Origin: Rebecca billardiae RCC1528
Lineage: Eukaryota; Protista; Haptophyta
Assembly: GCA_965240325.2 (NCBI GenBank)
Contig: OZ251232.1
Span: 1,612,001-1,676,000 of the forward strand
Length of the DNA: 64,000 nt
Direction of reading: 5' to 3'
Shown here in pieces: positions 29,101 to 45,813 of this stretch. The position numbers were made by a program, and so were the translations under genes. The notes beneath the pieces are model-generated. The model saw only the letters and a list, made by a program, of their open reading frames with translations. It was not told the DNA's origin and searched no databases. Within the stretch, counting starts at the first letter, position 1, and every line of letters begins with the position of its first letter.

Positions 29101-32100
29101 ATGAGAACCCTGCTCGGCTTGGCCTCGACAGCGCGGGACGGCCTCATTATCGTCACCGACCCGGGTCCAGATCCAGATGACGTGAAGGTGGGCCGCTCGG
29201 CGCGCATCGCGCCGCTCCGTCTGTCCACACGCCGTTCGCCCCGCTCACCGCCGTCCCGTGTGCGCCTGCTCTCGCTGCGCGCGTGTGTCCGCTGTTTGCA
29301 GGCACTTCTCATCGCAGCGATCCTGCACAAGCAGGGCCAGCTCGACCTGCTCGGAGTGGTGGCAAATGGCGGGCGTGATCCCACCTCGCGCGCTGCCCTC
29401 GCCCGGTGCATCCTCGACCACGTCGGCGAGCGCGACGTGCCTGTGGGCGTCGGTACCGCGTCGCCGAGCGATGCGCCGCCAATGCCGCACGAGTTCTCGC
29501 TCGAGGGCTTCGAGTCGGTGGACCGGAGCCGGCTAGAGGACGGGGCGCGCCTGCTAGTACGCGTATTGGAGGCCGCGCCCACCGCGAGCGTCACGATCCT
29601 GCTCATCTCCAGCCTGCGTGACTTTGCGGACATTGCTCGCACTCGTCCAGAGCTGGTGCTCGCCAAGGTGAGGGAGGTGGCCATCATGGGCGGGCTCGTC
29701 CCCGACGACGACGCGCCGGGCGGGTACGCGGCGGACGCGGCGACGAACAACAACTTCGACCGAGGCGCCGCCACCTTCACCTACCGCTTCTGCTTCGAGC
29801 AGGGCATGCCGATGACGGTCGTCTCTCGGCACATCATCCCGATGTTGCCGATGCACCTCGCGCGCTCCTTTGCCGACCGCACGGAGTGCCCCGTGATGCG
29901 CTACCTCGCCGACGCGCAGTTTCTCGGCCTCGCGGGTGCGCGCGCGCTGCGCCCATACGGCGTATCGTCACCGTGCGGTTGGCACCTCGCAGCGCCACGC
30001 GCTCGCATGCGCTCGCCGTATGCGCTCATCCCCACCCCCTGCATTTGCGCGTGGTGCGACGCGCATGTTGTTGTGGGTGGCGGCGGCGAGCAGGGCTCTG
30101 GAGACGGCTCTGCACAGGCGAGCTGCCTGCACGCTGCACCAAACAGTGGTACTTCGAGACCTTCTGCGACATCGACCGCTCTACATTCGAGGCACGAGGG
30201 CTCGACCGCCTTGGTGCGGACGCGGACATCATCTCGCTGCTGAACGGCTACGTGAAACCGTGCGCGCGCAAACGCGCCCTGCCACTGCTGCTGCCTGCCG
30301 CGCTGCCGACTTTTGCACATTGCCAGTCTGCCACCGCCAGCCTGCCCAACCAGCCCGCCGGGTGGCCAGCCCGGGGGCGTTGAACGTGGGGGTAGCGATC
30401 GCGCGTGCGCGGCGACCGGGGCCCTTGGCGCGCACGGCGCTCGCTCACCTCGCCCTTCTGGCTGCGCGCGCCCTGCCCACGCCGCGCACCGCACGGCAGG
30501 TACGACGTGATCGCGCTGATGGCTGTGCTCGAGCACACGCGCGGCCTCTTCGCCGACGCGCGCCACGCCGTGCAGCCTGCGGCGCGCGGCCGGAGGCCGG
30601 TGGAGCACCGCCTGCTGATCCAGCCGTGGCAGGCGCTGCCGTCCGAGCCGGTGCTCTCGCTGCTGCGCGACGTGTACATCGAGGTGGTGCTCGCGTCCAA
30701 CGGAGCCGCCGCCGATATGCCCCCGCGCCGAGGCGCGCTCGTGCGCATGTCGTCTGGCTCAGGCACCTCGGATCCCCCCGGTGGCGCCGGCGCCGGTCTC
30801 GGGCTCGGCGGGAGCGCGATGAGCGCGGCCGGTGGCTCCCAGCTCGCCACGTCGGCCGAGACGGCGGCGGCGATCGCGGCGGCGGCGGCGGCGGCGGCGG
30901 CGAGCATGCAGCACGTGCCACCGCGCGCGCGGCCGGAGAGGCTGCAGCTCCCCGTCGTCGACTCCCGGCTGCGCGCACGGCTGAGCGGCGAGGGCGCGCA
31001 CATCGTCAGCTCACCGCGCGGCTCGATGGACGAGGGCAGCTCGCCGACGCGCGCGGACAAGTTGCGCCTGCCCACGCTCGCGGAGGTCCCAATCCCGGGG
31101 CCGCTGAGCCGGGACGAGACGCTGGGCGTGCTCACCACCGCGCTTGAGCACGCGCGCGAGCTGCACCGCCGCCGCACGCCGCATGCCCTCGTCGTGGGTG
31201 CTGCGGTCGTGCTGGCGGCTCTGCTCGCGTGCGCGGCCGACTTCTTGACGACGGCGGCGCTGAGCGTCGCGGACCCTTTCCGCCGCCCACCGTTCCGAGC
31301 ACGAGTGCTGGCGTACACGTGCACGGCGTTGGCGGGCACGCCGCCCATACTCGTCTGCGTGCGGCCAGCCGGGACGCAGCGCGAGCGCATGACGCACAGC
31401 GCCAGGGCGCTCGCCGCGCTGCTCGTGGCAATCGTCGCCGCGCACGTGCGCGCGCACACGTACCGGCCGGCGATTGCGCGCGGAGCGACGACGACCGCAT
31501 GCGCGAGCGCGCTCGTGTGCGCGGGCGTGATGCTGTGGCGCGCGGAGGCGATGCGCAGGCACCGCATCTCGCCGCAGGCGGCGCTGCGCTCGCTCTGGGC
31601 CGCCGGCACCGCGTGGCTCTGTGCGTACGCCGGTTGCCTCAGCGCGATCGCGCGTGCCGAGGGCTGGCAGTGGTCGGCAGCTGCCGACGGCGCTCTCAAC
31701 GTGCTCGCGGCTGCGTGCGTCACCTGGGCGGCGTGGGCTCGGCTGCGGCGCGCAGTCCGCTGCCTCTTGCACCCGGGCACTGCCGGGCAGCTGAGCCGGC
31801 GCGAGCAGGCCATCGTCGGAAGGCTCACGCCGCTCGCGCCGCTGGCCCCGCTGCTCGGGTTTGGCGCACCGCACGAGCGCGCGGACCTCGGGAGCATCTG
31901 CCACGCGGCGGCCGTCACGCTGCGCGGCGTGAGCCTCGACCGAGCCGCGCGCACCTCGCAGTGGCTCGAGGCGGCGTTCAGCACGGTGGCAGACGGCGGC
32001 GGCGGCGGCGATGACGACTCCAGCGGTGGCGGCCTTCCCAGCGGCGTGGGGAGCGCGGGCGCCGGCCAAGGCCGCGGGCGCGCGGCGGGTCACATCTCGC

Positions 32101-32732
32101 CGCGGCGCCGCACGTCGGGTCCGGCGCTCGTGCCATCGTGGCTGCCGACGACGGGCGCGTCCAGCGCCGCGCGCATCGACGCGTATGTCTGCCACTCGCG
32201 CCACGACTCGGCCTCGGCGCGGCGCGACGCGCTGCTGCGCTGGGCGGAGCGCTTTGAGCAGCGGCACCGGCGCCCACCGCGCATCTACATCGACGGCGGC
32301 TGCGAGGACCTGTCGCTGCTGACGCACGAGCGGCTGGCGCATACACTCGTCCACCTGGCGAGCGTTCGCATACTGCTGATCCTCCCCGGGCCGCGCTTTG
32401 CCACGCAGCTGCGGCCCATCGTGCAGCTTTACTGCTGGCAGCTCATGCGCTCCGCGATCGACGTGGAGGTCAGCCTGGCGGCGCGCACCGAGCGCGGGGC
32501 GAACTCGACCATCTCGCAGTTTGACACGTTTGCCGTGGCCATGTGCGTGCCCGAGCCCGACCCGACGGAGCAGGCGTGTTTCGTGCGCGTCGTGGAGCAG
32601 GCGGGTGTGGCGCACTTCAACGAGGTCGTACGCGCCTACCTACCGGCTGTGCGCAACGCAGCATCCTCGGATGCCGCGCTTGGGGGCACGCCGAGTGCGC
32701 GCGCGACCGCCGTGCCGGCGGCGGGTCGGTGA
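29101..32732 (+). CDS. Nucleoside hydrolase (IU-NH fold) - ~6TM - TIR-like fusion protein, paralog A, 4 exons
   Basis: IIVTDPGPDPDD, VVANGG, ISSLRD, IMGG, TNNNFD and KPYD (NH domain). Six hydrophobic helices at about 31190-31740. C-terminal IDAYVCHSRHD...W...IYIDGGCED...LLILPGP...IVQL...FNEVVR (TIR-like). Introns 29188-29301, 29936-30093 and 30260-30499. Confidence 0.82.
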
Positions 32733-33470: not shown

Positions 33471-34751
33471 TCATCCGCCCTCAGCTGCAGCCTGCGCCGA
33501 CGCGTCGTGCAACCCGTCGCCCCCCGTGTGCGCCGCGTCGCACCCCGCAGCCTCAGCCAGCTGGCGCTCAAAGTGTCGCCGCTCTTCGCGCAGTGTGTGC
33601 GCGATGCGGTCGCCGCACCGGCGCTCGAGGCGTTTGATCGCGTCGAGCTGCGTCTGCGCAAACGCCACGGCCGCCTCGGAGTCCGTCGTGCTTGCGAATG
33701 GGCGGTGCTTCGCCGCCCGGCGCACGGCCTCGAGCTCCCGGCCCAACGCGCGTGCGTCCGCACTCACGCACGCGCGCGAAAAGGCGGCCCACACAAAGTC
33801 GATCGCCACCTCGCTCGGGTGGAGCATGTCCGGCGCGTAGAAGCGGTAGTCGCGCAGCTCGTCGAGCACGAGCTCGTACGCGGGGAAGTAGCACACGCCC
33901 GGCAGCGCGTGCGAGCTGTCCACGGTCGCTGCGTGAGCACCCGCGCCTCTGCCCGCTCGTCCGTCCTCAGACGAAGGCTCTGCGCGCGACTGCTGCAGCG
34001 CATGCGCTGCGAGCAGGCAGGAGGCCTTGGACAGCGCGTTGCCGTGCGCGCCGTCCTTCCAGTGACGCACCGGCGACACCGTGAGCACGACGTGCAGCTC
34101 GGGCCGCACCGCGCGCACGGCGCGCACGCCCGCCGCGAGCGCTGCCGCGGCCTCGCCAGGCTCCAGCAGGACTTTGGCAAACTGCTCCGGCGGTTGGCGG
34201 TGGCAGTTGGCGACGACCCGGCCCGCGGCCACCGGGGCGCCGGGCTGGGTGCGGTAGGCCCAGGCGGTACCGAGCGTGAGGAATAGCGCGCGCGCCTCGC
34301 GAAGCGCGGCGTGGCTTGACGCCAGCCGCGCGTTCATCCGCGCGAGCGTCGCATCCACGCCCGCGCCGCCCAGTGCCGAGTGGTGTTCAAACGACACGTA
34401 CTGCCCCGAGTGAGGCAGCGGTCCGATGAGCTCGGAGCGCTCGTACGGCTGAGCAGATGCGATGCGCTCGAGCGCCGTGCCGATCGAGAGCGGGTTGTAC
34501 AGGATCCCATGCGCCTCGTTGACCGACGCGCGGAGGCCGAGCCCAGCAAGCCGCGCGCCCATGTGCTCGGCAAAGCAGCTGCCCACGCACAGCACCGTGT
34601 CCTCCGTGCGCAGGGCGAAGGGCGCGCGCGGCACGCTGACAGCCGTGCGAAATGTGGGCTCCGCGGGCGAGCCACGCGCCGCCGACAGGGGCACGAGGGC
34701 GAGCAGCCCGAGGTAGACAGAGTGACGGACGGAGACGCGCATCGCCGCCAT
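33471..34751 (-). CDS. GSCFA-family (SGNH hydrolase-like) protein with N-terminal signal
   Basis: VGSCFAEH, YNPLSI, TLGTAW, VANCH, TVSPVRHWKDG, YFPAYE and DELRDYRFY..DMLHP. Likely start MAAMRV at 34751. Confidence 0.9.
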   Translation of the reverse strand: MAAMRVSVRHSVYLGLLALVPLSAARGSPAEPTFRTAVSVPRAPFALRTEDTVLCVGSCFAEHMGARLAGLGLRASVNEAHGILYNPLSIGTALERIASAQPYERSELIGPLPHSGQYVSFEHHSALGGAGVDATLARMNARLASSHAALREARALFLTLGTAWAYRTQPGAPVAAGRVVANCHRQPPEQFAKVLLEPGEAAAALAAGVRAVRAVRPELHVVLTVSPVRHWKDGAHGNALSKASCLLAAHALQQSRAEPSSEDGRAGRGAGAHAATVDSSHALPGVCYFPAYELVLDELRDYRFYAPDMLHPSEVAIDFVWAAFSRACVSADARALGRELEAVRRAAKHRPFASTTDSEAAVAFAQTQLDAIKRLERRCGDRIAHTLREERRHFERQLAEAAGCDAAHTGGDGLHDASAQAAAEGG

Positions 34752-34939
34752 CGTGATTCGTGCGTGCATGCACACGTGCGTCCTCGGATTTCGTTTTCGG
34801 CTTCGAATTATCTTTGTGAGCATCATGAATTCATGATGATCGTCAATCGTCATCAAAACATTAACATACAGCAGCAGCGCTGCGACGCGAGGGGTGCGGT
34901 GGATCCGCTCACAGCTGTCATCCCGCCGCCGCCAGCAGC

Positions 34940-36688
34940 TCAGTCGTGCAGCAGCAGTCGCGTGCGCTCCTTCTGTGAGCCGATGTACTGGTTCATCGCC
35001 ACGAGCCTGGCCACCTCCGGGTCGATCTGCTGGAAGCTTTGGCCGCGCGGCGGCGGCCCGCCGATCCAGAGGCCCTCTTCCGGCACGAAGCGCGCGCCCT
35101 CGCCGTCCTCCGACATGTCGTCGACCGAGACGGCGCCGTACGCGCCGCAGCCGGTGCGCGCCGTGAGCACGCGCCCGATCCACACTGCGAGTGGCAGGCA
35201 GAGCAGCGGCCCCGCGATCACGAGCACGCCCCCCTGCGCGTGCGTGCTCGGCTCGGGAGCGCCGAGCGTGGCCGTGCCGTGAGTGACGCGCGTGGCGACG
35301 AGCCGAGGGTCGGCCGTCAGCCTCACCTCCACGCCCGTGTCGCCGAGCTCGAGCCGTGGCGGCGGGTCGTCGGCGCGCGGCAGCCGCTTCGGCCCGCGCG
35401 CTGGAGCCAGCGGGCCGTACTGCGACGCCCCCAGCGCGCCCATCGGCGCCCTGAGCACCGCAGGCGGCAGCGTGCCAGTTGGGCCGCAGCCGAGTTCGGC
35501 GCGCAGCGCGGCCGCGGCGCGCTGCGCGCCGGGCATGCCCTCCGTGGCGGCAGCGGCGTCGTCGGGTTCGAGCGAGGTGCCCGCCGACCACGCCGTGGCG
35601 TTCGAGGCGCGCACTCTACCGTCTGCGCCCACGTCGATCGCGATGCACAGGTGCGCCAGGGCCTCGCGCAGCACGCACGCAACGCCGTGCGCGCCGGCGC
35701 CGCGATCGCCCGCACCGCCCGCACCGCCTGCGCTGTCTGGAGGGCTCAGCCGCTCGCACTCGCTCACAAAGCCGGCAGCGGCGGTGCTGGGCGCGGAGCG
35801 CACGCGCGTGCGCGTGAGCGCGACCGGCGGGAGGGCCAGCCTCGAGCGCACCCACCTCTCCGCGCCGCTGCTCAGCGCGTCAGCCCCAGACGCGCCGGCC
35901 GAGTCGGGCGGTGCAGTCCTGTGCTCAAGAGCGACCTCTGCCGAGCCACCCGCTCTGAGTGCGGCGTGTAGGGTGACGTTGGCGAGCAGTGGGCTGGCCC
36001 ATGCCTCGAGCGAGGGCAGCAGCGCCCCGTCCTCCCATGCCTCGCGCGCGCCGTCCCCGGCCGCGCCCGTCACCCGCTTGAGCGCCACGCGCGTCAGCCT
36101 CTGCGCCGGCTGCGACAACCGTTGGGTCGAGCGGAGCGCGCTGCGGGCGCCACCGCTCACGAAGCACGCCGCGTCGTACTGCAGCCGGTCCGGCGTGTCG
36201 GACAGGTCGTGCCGGCTGCTGCGGCTCGGCGCGTGGACGAGATGGAGCGGCCGTGCCGCGCGCCACACCGAGCCGTTGGGCAGCGCCAACGCGACGGAGG
36301 CGTTGAGCTCAAGCCGCAGGAGCCGCGGCAGGATCGCGCGACGCCATTCGCGGACAGCGTCCGCGTACTCAGCGGCCATCGCGCGGCGGCGCGCCTCGGC
36401 GGGCGAGAGCACCTCGGGCACTCGGATGAGCCCGAGCCCGTGCACAAACATCCACGCGCCCAGCGCGAAGAGCGCGCACAACCCAAGCAGCATGAGCGCG
36501 TCCTCGCGCGTGCGCGCGCAGGCATGCGCACAGAGGCGTAATCTGCGCATGAGCGCGACGCCGCAGCCCTTCGCGTCCTCGGCTGCGGACGCCGCATGTT
36601 GGCTGCGCGTGAGCCGATCGCGCCGCGCCCGACGAATCGCCAGTGACAGCTTGGAGGGCTCGTGCGCAAGCCCTCGCGGCCGCGCCAT
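34940..36688 (-). CDS. Hypothetical two-pass membrane protein
   Basis: Long ORF with two hydrophobic helices (LMLLGLCALFALGAWMFVHG; GGVLVIAGPLLCLPLAVWIG) flanking a large loop. Confidence 0.6.
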   Translation of the reverse strand: MARPRGLAHEPSKLSLAIRRARRDRLTRSQHAASAAEDAKGCGVALMRRLRLCAHACARTREDALMLLGLCALFALGAWMFVHGLGLIRVPEVLSPAEARRRAMAAEYADAVREWRRAILPRLLRLELNASVALALPNGSVWRAARPLHLVHAPSRSSRHDLSDTPDRLQYDAACFVSGGARSALRSTQRLSQPAQRLTRVALKRVTGAAGDGAREAWEDGALLPSLEAWASPLLANVTLHAALRAGGSAEVALEHRTAPPDSAGASGADALSSGAERWVRSRLALPPVALTRTRVRSAPSTAAAGFVSECERLSPPDSAGGAGGAGDRGAGAHGVACVLREALAHLCIAIDVGADGRVRASNATAWSAGTSLEPDDAAAATEGMPGAQRAAAALRAELGCGPTGTLPPAVLRAPMGALGASQYGPLAPARGPKRLPRADDPPPRLELGDTGVEVRLTADPRLVATRVTHGTATLGAPEPSTHAQGGVLVIAGPLLCLPLAVWIGRVLTARTGCGAYGAVSVDDMSEDGEGARFVPEEGLWIGGPPPRGQSFQQIDPEVARLVAMNQYIGSQKERTRLLLHD

Positions 36689-39236: not shown

Positions 39237-41211
39237 ATGGGCCTCGATTGGCTGCTGCCTTGGCGGCGGCGGCCGGCGCTGCTGCTGATCACTGATCCGG
39301 GTCCTGACCCCGACGACATCAAGGTTCGCGCGCTCGCGACGGGCGCCTGACGCGCGCTCGATCATTTCACACGGCCGCGCGCCCGCGTGCGCTCCGCTCC
39401 GCGCAGGCGATCCTGGTCGTCGCCGCGCTGCACCGGCGGCGGCAGATCGCGGTGAAGGGCGTGATCGCCAACGGCGGTTGCCAGGCGCTCGCGCGCGCCA
39501 AGCTCGCGCGCTGCGTGCTCGACAAGGTCGGCGCGCGCGACATCCCCGTCGGCATCGGCTCGGCGGGCAAACCGTATGAGCCTGTCGCGCACGAGTACGC
39601 GCTGCCCGGATATGAAAGCGTGGACGCGGCGAGGCTGGAGCCGGGGCACGCGCTGCTGATGCGCGCGCTGCGGCACGCGCGCGACAAGAGCCTCACCATC
39701 GTCTGCATCTCCTCGCTGCGCGACCTGGCGGACGCGATCGCCGAGGCGCGGCCGCTTGTGGTGCGCAAGACGCTGCGCGTCGCGATCCAGGGCGGGCTGG
39801 AGTGGAGCGACGAGAAGACGGCGTGGGAGCCGGACACGTCGGTGAACAACGAGTTCGACCGCGACGCGGCGAGTGCCGTGTACGCCTTCTGCTTCGCCGA
39901 GGGCGTGCCGCTCACCGTCGTCTCGCGGCACGCCGTGCCGCTGCTGCCAATGCAGGTGTGTGTGCGCGCGGGCGTTCGCGCGGCGGCGCGCGCGCTTGTG
40001 GCGGGCGCGCACGGGCGCGTGCTGTGCCCCGCCGCCCGCCCAGCCGCCCTCACGCAGCCCGCCCTGTCCCCAACCCTCCCACATCTCCCGCCACAGCTCG
40101 CGCGCTCCTTCGCGGAGCGGACGGAGAGCGACGTGCTGCGGTGCGCGCCGCCCGCCCGCCCGCGCGCACGCCCGCGCGCCCGCCCGCCCCCCGGCATGCA
40201 CGCACGCACGCCCACGCCCCGCTCGCGTCGCGCGCTCCCGCCCTCCGCCCCACGCGCCGCGCTCGGCCGCAGCTACCTCGCCAACGCGCAGTTCCTCGGG
40301 CTCGCCGGCCTGTGGCGCAAGCTGTGCGAGGGCCGCCTCCCCGCGCGCTGCACCAAGCAGTGGTACTTCGAGACCTTCTGCGGCGTGCCGGCTGCCAAGT
40401 TCGGCGCGCACGGCTACGACGCGCTCGACGGCACGGCGGACATCACGCAGCATCTGAACGGGTGCGCGCATACGTGTGGCGCGGCCCTGGCACACACGCC
40501 GGCTGACGCACCGCCGCCGCGCGCGCGCCGTGCACCCGCGCCGTGCACTCGCGCCGCCGCCCGCGCCGCCGCCCGCGCCGCCGCACCCGCAGCTACGTGA
40601 AACCTTACGACGTGGTCGCGCTGATGGCGGCGCTGCCGCACACGCAGCGCGCCTTCGGCCCCGGCGCGCCGCCGCGCGACGCGCTCGCGCCCGCCCCGTC
40701 CGTGCGCACCTCGCCCCCGCGCACGCCCTCGGTGCGCGCGCCGTCCATGGTGTCGCTCCGGAGCGCCAACGCCAACGCGTCACGCTCGAGTTCGCTCTCC
40801 TCCTTCTCGCGCGCCGGCGGCGGCCATTGCCTCTACCTGTCGCCGGAGCACGCGATCGACGTGGCGCACGTGGTCAAGCTGCTGCGCAACGTGTACCACG
40901 AGGCGGCGCTCACGGACGAGGCGGCGGGCGCGGAGCGCGGCCCCCGATCCGCGGCCGCGTCGTCGGCGGCGAGCGGTGCGCAAGGCGAGGAGGCGGCCGG
41001 CGCGGCGCGCGGCTCAAAGCGCAGTGGCTCAGGGCATTCGTCGCGCCGCAGCTCGAAGCTCCGCGTGCACCCGCGGCTGGCGCGCGCGCAGCGCGCCGAC
41101 GCGGACGAGCTGCGAGCGTCCGCGTGGACGGTTGGCTCGGGGCGCACGCGCACCGCCTTCTCTGACACGACCGAGGGCGATGGCTCGCACGGCGGCCGCG
41201 GCAGCGAGGCG

Positions 41212-41244
<33 letters not shown>

Positions 41245-43428
41245 CGGTGGGCGCGCGAGCCTGGCGCTCTGCTGGAGGAGGCGGAGATTGTTGCGTTGCT
41301 CGAGGCGGCGGTCCGCCGCGCGCGCGAGCGCGCGAGGCTGGCCACGCTCCTCGCCGCGCTGCTCGCCTTCTCGCTCTTCGTCGCGGCCGCGGCGATGCGC
41401 GGCCTGGACGCAGCGGCGTGGGTGCAATCGAGCGCCGGCCGGCGGCGCGAGGTGTTGGATGGGGGTCGCGGCGACGCGGCCGCGCTCGACTCGGCGGTGG
41501 CGGAGGACGCGCTCTGGATGCGGTGGCGCGCGGCGGGGCTGACCCTGCACGTCGCGTTCGCGCTGTGCGCGCTCGCGCTGCAGCCGATCCCGTCGCACTC
41601 GCGCATCACGCGCGCGTCCGCGCTCGTGTTTTGCCTCGTCGTCGGCGTGGACGGTTACAATGCGATGCGCACAGGCGTGCGCGGTCTGTCGGCTCTGGAG
41701 GAGCAGGCGGGCTTGCTCCCGTGCGAGGCGGGGCTCGGCGCGGCGCTGCGCGCCGCGATGCACGGCGTGATCGCGACAGGCGGCGCGGCGTACCTGGCCA
41801 TCGTCGCGGCACTCGCCGCCGTCTGGCTCGGCACCGCGCACCAACCGCCAGTGTCGCGCACGCGCGCGCGCGTGCGCGCGGTGTGGCTGGCTAACGCGTG
41901 CGCGGCCGCGCTGCTCGCGCTGCTGCTGCTCGGCGCGAGCGTGCTCTGTGGGCCGGTCACCGGCTGGCTCGCGAGCCGGCCGACGGCGGGCATCCGCGAG
42001 TACATCCACGCGCACACCGGCGCCACGTGCGCCGTCGCCATCGCGCTGCTCTGGCCGGGCTCGCGCGAGCGCACGCGCTGGGCGCTACTGCGCGCGGCTG
42101 CGCACTGCGCAAGCACGCTGCGGCCCGTGCGCGCCGGCACGGGCGGCGCGCCGCTGCTCGCCGCGCTCGCGCCCCTCGTGCAGTTCGGCGAGGGCGAGAG
42201 CGCGGACTCGCTCGGTCAGCTCACGCGCGAGGCGCTCCGCGTGCTGCGCGGCGTGGCGCTCGACGCGGCCTTCTTCGCGCGCGCCGAGGCGGGCTCGCAT
42301 CGCGGCCGCGCGGCCGCTGGCAGGAGCAGCCTCAGCCGCGCGGGCGGCGGCGCGCGCGCGCTGCGGGCCGCGCGGCTGTACTCGCGCGCGGACGAGGGTC
42401 GGAACACGGGGGCGAGCGACTTGAGCCTTCTCGACACGCCGGCGTCGTCGCTCTCCGGCCTCGGCCGACGGCTCAGCGCAGCCGCGCGCAGCTCGGGCGC
42501 CCGCTTGTCCGGCGCCGGCGCGCCCGCGCCGCCGCGGTCGGGCGTCCTGGGCAGTTGCTGCTTTGGCGGCGGCGCACGGCTCGTCGGCCGGCGCAAGCTC
42601 TCGCTGCAGCAGCTCGGCGAGGTCGCGCAGCACGCGATGCACAACCTGCTCGACGCGCGCGCGGACGTGCGAGCCGTCTCGACGCTCGAGCAGCTGCGCC
42701 ACGCGCAGGCGCCGGAGGTGGACCGGGTGGTAGTACACTCAGCTTTTGACGACCCTCGGCTGCGGATGCGCGCGCTCGCGGAGTGGGGCGCGCGCTTCGA
42801 GGCGGCGAACGGCCGGCCGGCGCGCGTGTGGCTGTGGGCGGCGTGCGCGGATGCGTCGCTGACGCACGCGGAGCAGCTCGCGCACGTCGTCGTCTACCTG
42901 TGCCGCGCACGCGGGCTGCTCGTCCTGGCCGGACCCACCGTTCCAGATTCGCTCGAATGCGTCGTGCAACTGCTTGCGTTCCGCGCGTGCGGCGGCGCGG
43001 CCTCGGCCGTCGACGTCGCCGTCGTGGGCGAGAGCGAGGCGGCGCGCCGCGCGGCGGTCGCCGCGTTCGATGCGTTCCACGTCGTCTACGCGCGCGCGCG
43101 CTCGCGCTCCGCGGCGGAGCGCCACGCCCTCGTCGCCGCGGTCGAGCAGGTGGGCGCGCCGCGCGTGAACGAGGCGGTGCGAGCTCTGCTGCCCGCCGTT
43201 CAGCGCGCGGCGGCGGCCGCCGCCGCCGCGGACGCAAAGCAGTCGGACCGTGCGGGCGGGAGCGTCGGCGAGGCCGAGGGGCCCGCGGGCGCGGCGGCCG
43301 ACGGCGAGGACGCCACGGCGGACGGCGCGGACGAGGAGGCCGCCGCCGCGCGCGAGGCTGGCGAGGCCAGCGACGAGACGGCGACGGCGGTCGAGGGGAT
43401 GGTGGAGGGCGTGGAGGCGGCGGAGTGA
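39237..43428 (+). CDS. Nucleoside hydrolase (IU-NH fold) - ~6TM - TIR-like fusion protein, paralog B, 5 exons
   Basis: MGLDWLLPWRRRPALLLITDPGPDPDDIK|AILVV, VIANGG, ISSLRD, SVNNEFD, LPARCTKQWYFETFC and KPYDVVALM. Six TM helices, then VDRVVVHSAFDD...W...VWLWAACAD...LLVLAGPT...CVVQL...VNEAVR. Introns 39324-39406, 39956-40096, 40141-40272 and 40462-40592. Confidence 0.82.
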
Positions 43429-43698: not shown

Positions 43699-45813
43699 TC
43701 ACTCCATCTCAGCAGTGCTGATCCCAGCAGATGCCGCTGAGTAGCCTGCGGCTGCTGGCGCCGGCGGATGAGCACCGCCGTTATTCCGGCCGTTACTCAA
43801 TCCGTTAGCAGCCCGGCCGCTGCCCGGCGTCCGCTTGGCCGGGCTCGGCCAAATCTCCCCATCGACGTCGTCGTCGTCGTCATCGTCGTGACGCGTGCGC
43901 GGGCTGTGCGCTGCGCTGCCAGTGTCGACGCACGCGGCAAGGCCTCGGAGTGCCCTGGCAAGCACACGGCGCGGCGCGTCCGTACACGAGCGCCACGCCG
44001 CGCCGGCCGCGCCCACCGCACCGGGCGCCGCCGCGCCGCGCGAGCCGTCGGCGCCCTCGTCCTCAGCGTCCTCTTCGCCCTGCTCGACGTTCGAGAGCCG
44101 CCGGATCGGCCCCGAAAGCCTGCGCACCAGGCCGCGCGCCCCGCCGCCCCCGCCGCCGTTGATCAGCAGCGGCGCGGAGGGCGAGCCGGCCGTCCCCTCG
44201 TCTGCAAAATGCACGATGGACTGCTTGCGCCGGGCGGGCGTGCCCGCCGCGCCGACCCCGCCGACCCGTCCGTCCGGCGGGGGCGTCGGCGCGGCCGGGT
44301 TGGGCGGCGGCGGCGTCGGCGGCGCCGCGCGCGGCGCCGCCGTCTGCCCCGGCCCCGCTGTCGTCGAGCGCCCGTCCTCCCAGTCCCGCCACGGCGCGCC
44401 GCGCAGCATCGCCTCCACCTCCTCCAGGATTTCGTCATCAGCATACCGCCCGCCGTTGGGCGCCCGCAGCCCGTCCCAGAACGCGAGCCACTCGTGCAGC
44501 GAGATGGCGTGGCTCGCGTCGTCGTCGACCTCGGAGAACATCGCCAGCGCCGACAGCGTGCCGAACCTGCCCAGCGGCCCGGACTGCCAGTGCGTCTCCG
44601 CCTCTTGCAGGTCAACCTCGCCGTTGCCGTTCCGGTCGAGGCTCTCAAAAAGTGCCGTGACGCGCGCGGCGAAGGCGGGCGGCATGGGCACGCGCGGCGG
44701 CGGCGACGCGTCGGTGCTCGAGGTGCTCGGCCTCGCGCCCGCATCCGCGAAGCTCAGCCGCGCGCTCGGCCGCCTCGAGCCGTTCTGCGACGACGACGAC
44801 GCGGACGATGCGCGCCTGTTGTGCGCGTGCGCGTGCGCGCCGGCGCCACTCGCGCACATGGGCGCGGGCGCGGGCAGCTCGGACGAGCGCGGCGCGGGCG
44901 GCGTGGACGACAGCGTGATCGCAGCCGGCGCCTCCCTCGCCGCCGCGCGCGCCTCCGCCATCGCCTCCGCCGCGCTCCCACTCGCGCCCGCGCCGAGGGC
45001 GGCGCTGCGCCCAGCGCTCGGCCGCCGCTCAAGGGAGGCGCCTGTGACTTCGGCGAGCTCGGCGGCGCGTGCCGCGGCGGCCTTGGCCTCCTCGGCCTCG
45101 AAGTGCGCGACCGCGGCCGCGCGCGCGGCGCGCGTCGCGCCCACCTGCGACCGGCGTGCCTCCTCCTGCGCCTCCTCCACCGCCTTGAGCTTCGCGCTCG
45201 CGCGGGGCGACGCCGACCAGAAGGAGAGTGATCGCGCGGAGCCGCCGCGCGAAAACGCGCGCGGCGGCCTCGCGAGCAGCTCGGCGGCGGTCATCGAGTT
45301 GGCTCGCGAGGCGCGCTGTGCGCTCGGGTCGAGTGTGGCGCCCACGTGCCCCGCGAATGCCGAGCTCCTCGACGCAGACGCCGGGTCGGACGACGGCGTC
45401 GCGGGCGGCGGCGGCGCAGCCACGCCGCTCATCAGGTCTGTCGTCGACGACGCGCGCGCGCCCATGGACAGGATGGCCTGGCTCATGCGCTCGTCGCGCT
45501 CGAGGCTGCGTCGCCTCGCCTCTGAATCGGTGCCCGCCTCCGCCGCGGCTGCGCGGGAGGGCCCGACCCCGCCGAGCCTCCCGTCCGGCGGCCTGTCCGC
45601 AGCTGCAGAAGCTCGCGCGCCGCCGGCTGCGGCGCCAGGGCCGCTCGGGGCTGCCGAGGCGGGCCGTGAGCGCGGTGCGGAACGTACTGGTGTGCTGGTC
45701 ACGGTACTTGCGGACGAGCTGCTCTCGAAGAGCGCGCGCGCCGCTTTCACACCGCCCGCGACGATCATGTCGCGCGGCGATGGCCGCGGCATCGTGTCGA
45801 CACGGCTGCTCAT
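43699..45813 (-). CDS. EF-hand calcium-binding protein with long disordered flanks
   Basis: Paired EF loops DRNGNGEVDLQE and DDDASHAISLHE in a 704-aa ORF. Confidence 0.8.
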   Translation of the reverse strand: MSSRVDTMPRPSPRDMIVAGGVKAARALFESSSSASTVTSTPVRSAPRSRPASAAPSGPGAAAGGARASAAADRPPDGRLGGVGPSRAAAAEAGTDSEARRRSLERDERMSQAILSMGARASSTTDLMSGVAAPPPPATPSSDPASASRSSAFAGHVGATLDPSAQRASRANSMTAAELLARPPRAFSRGGSARSLSFWSASPRASAKLKAVEEAQEEARRSQVGATRAARAAAVAHFEAEEAKAAAARAAELAEVTGASLERRPSAGRSAALGAGASGSAAEAMAEARAAAREAPAAITLSSTPPAPRSSELPAPAPMCASGAGAHAHAHNRRASSASSSSQNGSRRPSARLSFADAGARPSTSSTDASPPPRVPMPPAFAARVTALFESLDRNGNGEVDLQEAETHWQSGPLGRFGTLSALAMFSEVDDDASHAISLHEWLAFWDGLRAPNGGRYADDEILEEVEAMLRGAPWRDWEDGRSTTAGPGQTAAPRAAPPTPPPPNPAAPTPPPDGRVGGVGAAGTPARRKQSIVHFADEGTAGSPSAPLLINGGGGGGARGLVRRLSGPIRRLSNVEQGEEDAEDEGADGSRGAAAPGAVGAAGAAWRSCTDAPRRVLARALRGLAACVDTGSAAHSPRTRHDDDDDDDVDGEIWPSPAKRTPGSGRAANGLSNGRNNGGAHPPAPAAAGYSAASAGISTAEME

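Follow-up and report, generated by a model that had tools for sequence, protein, structure and literature searches.

Tandem TIR-fold domains fused to a XopQ-like hydrolase in an algal genome carry glutamine in place of the catalytic glutamate and have probably lost NAD+ cleavage

Two paralogous genes, A and B, in the window (the whole stretch of DNA analysed here, 64,000 nucleotides) encode C-terminal TIR-fold domains in which glutamine stands at the position of the catalytic glutamate. We read each gene as coding for one multi-exon membrane protein made up of a XopQ/HopQ1-like domain, about six membrane segments and, at the C-terminus, a TIR-fold domain. The TIR domain would have lost catalysis and been kept as a folded module, and the XopQ-like domain would supply any enzymatic activity. 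The pattern of Glu loss across the family would be one of repeated active-site decay with the fold retained, the Gln itself being under no special selection. To this joint reading, which draws on sequence comparison, a predicted structure and analogy with characterised proteins, we assign a probability of roughly 0.6.

Results

Gene structure and domain order

The window has a G+C content of about 72% and contains long open frames with many low-complexity runs, separated by GT-AG introns, and is therefore eukaryotic. Paralog A lies on the forward strand with its TIR-like domain in the last exon, and paralog B follows 10 kb downstream. By translation, exon 1 of A (29101–29187, +; GT after 29187) carries the start codon, the first strand of the hydrolase domain and a DPGPDPDD aspartate motif of the DXXXDXDD type (29158–29181, +). 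Exon 2 (29302–29935, +; AG before 29302) encodes the core of a XopQ-like nucleoside hydrolase, recognised by Pfam IU_nuc_hydro (E = 1.6 × 10−10), and the hydrolase continues in exon 3 (30094–30259, +; LWRRLC...YVKP), which is delimited by splice sites and has counterparts in paralog B and in the homolog P0091. The last exon (30500–32732, +) is an open frame with a GC3 of 0.90 that runs from the end of the hydrolase (YDVIAL) through a low-complexity linker, a membrane block and the TIR-like domain to the stop codon. The membrane block is a putative six-transmembrane unit of six hydrophobic segments (31188–31733, +), as predicted solely by a Kyte–Doolittle scan.

In paralog B, translation places exon 1 at 39237–39323 (+) with DPGPDPDD at 39294–39317, and the main XopQ-like hydrolase piece lies at 39392–39958 (+; 51% identity to A by tblastn; IU_nuc_hydro E = 7.4 × 10−6, below the curated cut-off). 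Further exons with approximate boundaries fall between 39958 and 40590, followed by a long open frame (40543–43428, +; true exon start near 40590) that holds the hydrolase end (YDVVAL), linker, membrane block and TIR-like domain. The C-terminal domains, of 165 residues in A (32166–32660, +) and 167 in B (42709–43209, +), belong to the same profile family and are 35–36% identical over 165–167 residues (36% for B to A), with two one-residue gaps and the frame unbroken. GC3 reaches 0.90 (A) and 0.89 (B) against a GC2 of 0.48 (A) and 0.54 (B), a strong codon periodicity that marks the frame as a real coding frame.

The hydrolase domain begins no more than about 15 residues from the N-terminus, too close for a signal peptide to fit in front of it, and about six hydrophobic segments come after it; from these two features we infer that both soluble domains, hydrolase and TIR, face the cytosol. 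After the membrane block and before the TIR domain, A and B share a short proline-rich stretch (LAPL..FG; approximately 31809–31865 in A and 42150–42250 in B), a possible juxtamembrane element that also scores weakly as a seventh hydrophobic segment. Two reverse-strand open frames lie beside these genes: one between the paralogs (33471–35588, −) matches Pfam GSCFA (PF08885, E = 2.5 × 10−70) with no link to the TIR genes seen, and one directly downstream of paralog B (43699–45810, −) has a weak EF-hand match (E = 4 × 10−5, below the cut-off).

The hydrolase part was searched exon by exon, not as a joined protein. Exon 2 of paralog A had XopQ as its best PDB match (4kl0, 4p5f and 7jlu; E = 7.5 × 10−10), and the homolog P0091 (1–309) aligned with XopQ over 307 residues (E = 1 × 10−25), pairing TDPGPDPDDV with TDPNKDPDDV and KPYDVVAL with NLYDPLTL. 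HopQ1/XopQ proteins are defined by DXXXDXDD in place of DXDXXXDD (PMC3608555), and DPGPDPDD has this form in both A and B; both also contain a Tyr-Asp (in YDVIAL and YDVVAL, respectively) that is the counterpart of the YD in XopQ. The fused hydrolase invoked by the earlier note is present in both copies, with its aspartate motif apparently intact. According to a June 2026 preprint, 2'cADPR, which TIR domains produce, is cleaved to ADPR by XopQ at an efficiency close to the diffusion limit (bioRxiv 10.64898/2026.06.15.732069); because XopQ is reported as such a hydrolase, the fusion would by analogy couple a TIR domain with an enzyme that probably breaks down TIR signals. Among the top-ranked papers of our literature search, none described a hydrolase–membrane–TIR fusion. 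At the nucleotide level, a 113-base stretch of a Diacronema lutheri homolog (L001:10844–10956) is 88% identical to paralog B (40274–40386); it encodes LWRKLC...QWYFETF of the hydrolase and stands out from the remainder of the gene by its much higher conservation.

Fold and family

Searched alone, the A and B domains gave no TIR match among Pfam, PADLOC and PDB sequences: Pfam TIR and TIR_2 (PF01582, PF13676) had no match at E ≤ 10 for either, let alone above the gathering threshold, and HET (PF06985) matched neither, the best relative reaching E = 2.5 × 10−3, below the cut-off. A word-index protein search with ORF residues 570–775 and with the two-domain alignment returned no close orthologs, and the closest relatives by identity stood at 42–46%. 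An exhaustive protein search with a profile of the two paralog domains retrieved 1309 proteins at E ≤ 1 × 10−3 and 512 at E ≤ 1 × 10−10; since both of these domains bear Gln, the profile may enrich degenerate relatives among the 150 matches listed. The family is large, protist and haptophyte-rich, has the signature GPxYxxRLWCxxE and lies between Pfam TIR_2 and HET. A language-model look-up led to haptophyte clusters automatically named 'HET domain-containing' and 'TIR domain-containing', and HET is considered remotely related to TIR (PMC10890737).

We aligned 107 full-length relatives with A and B (alignment A3, 109 rows). Sub-threshold Pfam matches in these relatives comprised 22 to TIR_2 (best E = 4 × 10−4), 22 to HET and 2 to TIR (best E = 1 × 10−3). 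The A3 profile best matched the TIR domains of TLR15 and SIGIRR in the PDB (E ~0.03), and a profile of a 29-member canonical clade had the TIR domain of Arabidopsis SNC1 as its first match. With A3 as input, AlphaFold2 modelled the paralog A domain with a pLDDT of 95.5 and a pTM of 0.90; this model was preferred to an earlier prediction with only the two paralogs aligned (pLDDT 51). All of the first 44 rows of a Foldseek search of the PDB with the A model were TIR domains, led by SNC1, RPS4, RPP1 and RUN1. VIA-align scored the model at Z 10.6 to RPPT-TIR (134 residues, 3.5 Å), 10.6 to RPP1, 10.1 to RUN1 and 9.9 to SARM1 and MyD88; TIR domains made up 49 of the 50 entries listed, the first non-TIR entry appearing at rank 50. 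A nucleoside 2-deoxyribosyltransferase-like fold was rejected, as that family occurred only at this last rank (Z 7.9), under the 49 TIR entries. An Atlas shape search gave TM scores of 0.84–0.89 to haptophyte clusters and 0.63–0.65 to plant clusters composed entirely (100%) of Pfam TIR. On the predicted structure, the C-terminal domain of the paralogs is a TIR fold, the flavodoxin-like β–α alternation of solved TIR domains (strands βA–βE, helices αA–αE), as the earlier note had supposed, and the A and B domains are part of an uncurated branch of the TIR/HET superfamily that is rich in haptophytes.

Glutamine at the catalytic position

The βC–αC motif of paralog A, GPRFATQLRPIVQL (32388–32429, +), is degenerate relative to the family consensus GPxYxxRLWCxxEL and has Gln (CAG, 32424–32426, +) at domain residue 87, assigned by codon reading and by profile column. 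In paralog B the motif reads GPTVPDSLECVVQL (42931–42972), with Gln (CAA, 42967–42969, +) in the catalytic-Glu column and a Glu at the family Trp position (residue 83; 42955–42957, +) one helical turn before it. Re-reading by translation returned both Gln codons where the earlier note had found them. Sequencing error was dismissed, since Gln is encoded by a different codon in each copy; in either one, a single substitution (GAG to CAG, or GAA to CAA) turns Glu into Gln.

Among the matches listed, 108 rows have Glu in the aligned column, 10 have Gln and 8 have Leu, with the consensus GPxYxxRLWCxxE; R-L-W-C-x-x-E is invariant in the 29-member canonical clade, and the gap-free alignment is anchored by G75, P76, L82, L88 and W/F91. 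HMMER aligned the motif stretch to SPSFVNSCWCQYELYF of TLR15 and to FSKNYASSTWCLNELVEI of SNC1, pairing WCvvEL with WCQYEL and WCLNEL, respectively, such that the family Glu falls on the WCxxEL Glu in both. In the A model, residue 87 lies in helix 82–94, directly after strand 69–73. No Asp or Glu occurs anywhere in domain residues 69–98 of paralog A, and therefore no small shift of the alignment can place a Glu there. Profile alignments and the position in the predicted helix together put the Gln of A and B at the catalytic-Glu position of helix αC, in agreement with the earlier note, which had equated it with the canonical TIR glutamate.

The catalytic Glu protrudes from αC in TIR enzymes (bioRxiv 10.64898/2026.04.20.719644); where catalytic TIR domains direct this Glu into the pocket, A and B have Gln. 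Product formation is abolished in TLR4 E750Q and in Chlamydomonas TIR E264Q (bioRxiv 10.64898/2026.04.20.719644), which bears out the premise of the earlier note that E-to-Q kills TIR catalysis. A conserved Ser after strand βA lies near the catalytic Glu (SNC1 S26, SARM1 S567; bioRxiv 10.1101/2025.04.09.647920). Its likely column, by sequence alignment to TLR15 only, is residue 9: A has Cys there, B has Val and, within A3, Ser occupies it in 29 of the 74 Glu-bearing members vs. one of the 35 Glu-less members. D43 and D48 (VWLD..C.D) are candidates for the Asp of the BB-loop region, and either may match the plant BB-loop Asp; A keeps both, and B has Trp43 and keeps D48. By these comparisons, the TIR domains of A and B probably cannot cleave NAD+.

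Loss of glutamate across the family

Glu occupies the column in 74 rows of A3 and is replaced in 35 (A and B included) by Q (9), L (8), A (6), H (4), T (3), V (2) and P, I and D (one each), counts of state that ignore kinship. Of the close-clade members listed, about 45% are without Glu and about 12% have Gln, such that two Gln in A and B are only mildly non-random. On trees built without the motif columns, changes between Glu and non-Glu states numbered at least 16 in the quick tree of 109 rows and at least 13 in the careful tree of 77 rows. Supported sister groups differ at the site: P0041 (Q) vs. P0076 (E), P0018 (E) vs. P0077 (V) and P0051/P0058 (L), and P0010/P0026 (E) vs. P0045 (H) and P0019 (Q)/P0020 (H). 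P0019:526–687 and P0020:73–229 are near-identical (branches 0.06 and 0.07) and have Q and H, respectively, which indicates that the site drifts once Glu is gone.

Other motif residues are lost along with Glu. From Glu-bearing to Glu-less members of A3, R81 drops from 62% to 9%, W83 from 73% to 9%, C84 from 76% to 24% and S11 from 82% to 36%; D5, D14, L23, W26, P38, W41, L57, G95, F122 and N152 are equally conserved in Glu-less members. Paralog A has Q81, R83 and P84, and paralog B has S81, E83, C84 and Trp for D43; the motif neighbours have been lost differently in the two copies, and there is therefore no common or conserved pocket. Fusion to the hydrolase was found in 15 of the 150 matches listed, and 14 of these 15 keep Glu, Diacronema lutheri KAG8460936.1 being one of the hydrolase-fused, Glu-bearing homologs. 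That so many homologs of the same architecture have Glu argues for recurrent active-site decay and not for a conserved Gln or ligand pocket.

These results depart from the functional picture in the earlier note, which had proposed a conserved pseudo-enzyme that binds NAD- or ADPR-type ligands and delegates catalysis to the fused hydrolase. Conservation does not hold up against the Glu of 14/15 fused homologs, the at least 13–16 losses with varied replacements and the Q-versus-H difference between P0019 and P0020. Ligand binding sits poorly with the loss of the pocket-motif neighbours, which went differently in A and B. As for delegation, the hydrolase is equally present in Glu-bearing relatives, and there is therefore no substitution of roles.

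The two Gln may go back to one event. A is closest to P0001 (42% identity) and B to P0009 (46%), and at 36% to each other A and B are not mutual best matches; the hydrolase-domain tree is a star. The careful tree places both in the basal polytomy of a 71-member clade (support 100/100), and a clade of A plus B was not rejected (AU test, p = 0.97). The placement of A beside the canonical clade in the quick tree was discarded as a short-search artefact, because keeping A and B together improves the tree by 52 log-likelihood units. It is plausible that Glu changed to Gln once, in an ancestor that preceded the tandem duplication, and since the A + B clade is unrejected, one shared ancestral change explains the two Gln equally well. 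No TIR-family gene lies within 10 kb of P0002, the homolog from D. lutheri (locus 73% G+C), and so that locus shows no conserved gene pairing.

Discussion

Interpretation and alternative explanations

In the reading we favour, the TIR domains of A and B would not cleave NAD+ themselves, and Glu-less TIR domains of this family would persist as non-catalytic interaction or regulatory modules, comparable to RRS1-type and TLR/IL-1R TIR domains. As a matter of conjecture, their probable partners would be Glu-bearing paralogs from within the family. The only likely enzyme here would be the XopQ-like domain, plausibly hydrolysing a TIR-made cyclic ADP-ribose isomer, and Gln would be one of many replacements tolerated once catalysis had become dispensable.

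The residue itself invites a different view, in which the Gln pocket is conserved as a non-cleaving binding site for NAD+, ADPR or a cyclic ADPR isomer and so gates the membrane block or the hydrolase. Gln, an isostere of Glu, serves experimentally as a substrate trap, it is the commonest single replacement (9/35), S11, H10, D14, C46 and D48 are kept in both A and B, and with the A + B clade unrejected it may date from before the duplication. We nevertheless regard such a pseudo-TIR as quite unlikely, given that the residues of the pocket motif differ between the copies (Q81/R83/P84 in A vs. S81/E83/C84 in B), that D43 is also gone in B, that near-identical relatives flip from Q to H and that Glu remains in 14/15 hydrolase-fused homologs. 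A proposal restricted to paralog B is that Glu83 (LECVVQL), the residue that the earlier note had itself flagged as a possible alternative at the catalytic site, has taken over from Glu 87, leaving the domain an enzyme, perhaps with altered chemistry. We think this very unlikely: column 83 is the family Trp, so that a motif residue is lost, B also lacks R81 and D43, and the literature we looked at held no precedent for a shifted Glu in TIR domains. Such a relocation cannot explain both copies either, because paralog A has Arg at residue 83. What speaks for it is geometry and distribution, residue 83 lying one turn earlier on the same face of αC and being Glu in 9/35 Glu-less vs. 0/74 Glu-bearing members (Fisher p = 1.7 × 10−5, a test that ignores relatedness), in about six separate lineages; migrated catalytic residues are also described as a recognised origin of false pseudoenzyme calls (PMC10211241). 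His shows the same pattern at column 83, with 6 Glu-less vs. 0 Glu-bearing members.

The Gln might also be without any function if the TIR domains, or the whole genes, were becoming pseudogenes. A and B have long terminal branches (0.95–1.2) and have lost several consensus residues, and sequence of 72% GC readily yields long open frames, with many overlapping ORFs. Against such decay of the copies stand the fold-core residues kept in A and B, a confident model from the sequence of A itself, strong codon periodicity, intact splice sites, hydrolase motifs intact in both and 165–167 aligned codons at 36% identity without a frame break, and we judge it improbable to a similar degree as a relocated carboxylate.

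A more speculative idea, which we hold tentatively and consider unlikely, is that Glu-less copies act as built-in dampers, the dead TIR bringing the XopQ-like hydrolase to active paralogs. The dead TIR would dock on Glu-bearing paralogs at the membrane, and the hydrolase would destroy the cyclic ADP-ribose signal of these partners; in a sub-variant for paralog B and eight relatives, the catalytic carboxylate would have been re-sited by one helical turn to column 83. If true, this would be an algal, self-encoded counterpart of pathogen XopQ and of RRS1 acting on RPS4.

Comparison with known systems

TIR domains without Glu are well known from animal TLRs, RRS1-type proteins and the TeTIR domain of NPHP3, which also lacks Glu, and the Gln alone is therefore unsurprising. 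Returning to the favoured reading of lost catalysis in a retained fold, its value lies in the context, a TIR/HET branch that has repeatedly lost its active site, with the fold kept, and, in these proteins, fusion with a XopQ-like hydrolase. Natural Glu-bearing and Glu-less versions of the three-part protein form a ready-made separation-of-function series, which offers a route to the role of TIR signalling in marine algae; a link between TIR genes and resistance to viruses has been drawn in these organisms (PMC12489294).

Plant TIR NADases (SNC1, RPP1, RUN1, RPS4 and Roq1) are the best structural matches of the A model, with a Foldseek probability of 1.0 and VIA Z scores of 10.1–10.6 over 132–136 residues. 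Their βC–loop–αC motif, S.WCL.EL, resembles the RLWC..EL of the algal family, but identity to A and B is only about 10%, and A and B lack the Glu and the preceding Trp. The attached parts also differ, being a membrane block and a hydrolase in A and B and NB-ARC-LRR in the plant proteins. RRS1-type sensor TIRs lack the catalytic Glu and active-site motifs, and associate with and restrain a catalytic partner TIR (PMC13732033). A and B are likewise without Glu, and a partnership of this kind in algae would be an analogy; unlike the RRS1 case, the window has no sensor–executor gene pair, because both neighbouring copies are without Glu.

Most animal TLR, IL-1R and adaptor TIRs lack a catalytic site and serve as interaction scaffolds that are membrane-anchored and cytosolic; in contrast to A and B, the TLR/IL-1R proteins are single-pass receptors with an LRR or Ig ectodomain and have no fused hydrolase. 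HET (PF06985) gives sub-threshold matches over W..F...G..P.LWLD..C.DQ in 22/29 canonical relatives, whereas HET proteins are cytosolic fungal cell-death proteins. A and B resemble XopQ/HopQ1 in having the DXXXDXDD motif and, in the C-terminal half, a Tyr-Asp. XopQ is an effector that bacteria secrete, whereas in A and B the domain belongs to an algal membrane protein that also contains a TIR domain, and its activity on cADPR isomers is putative.
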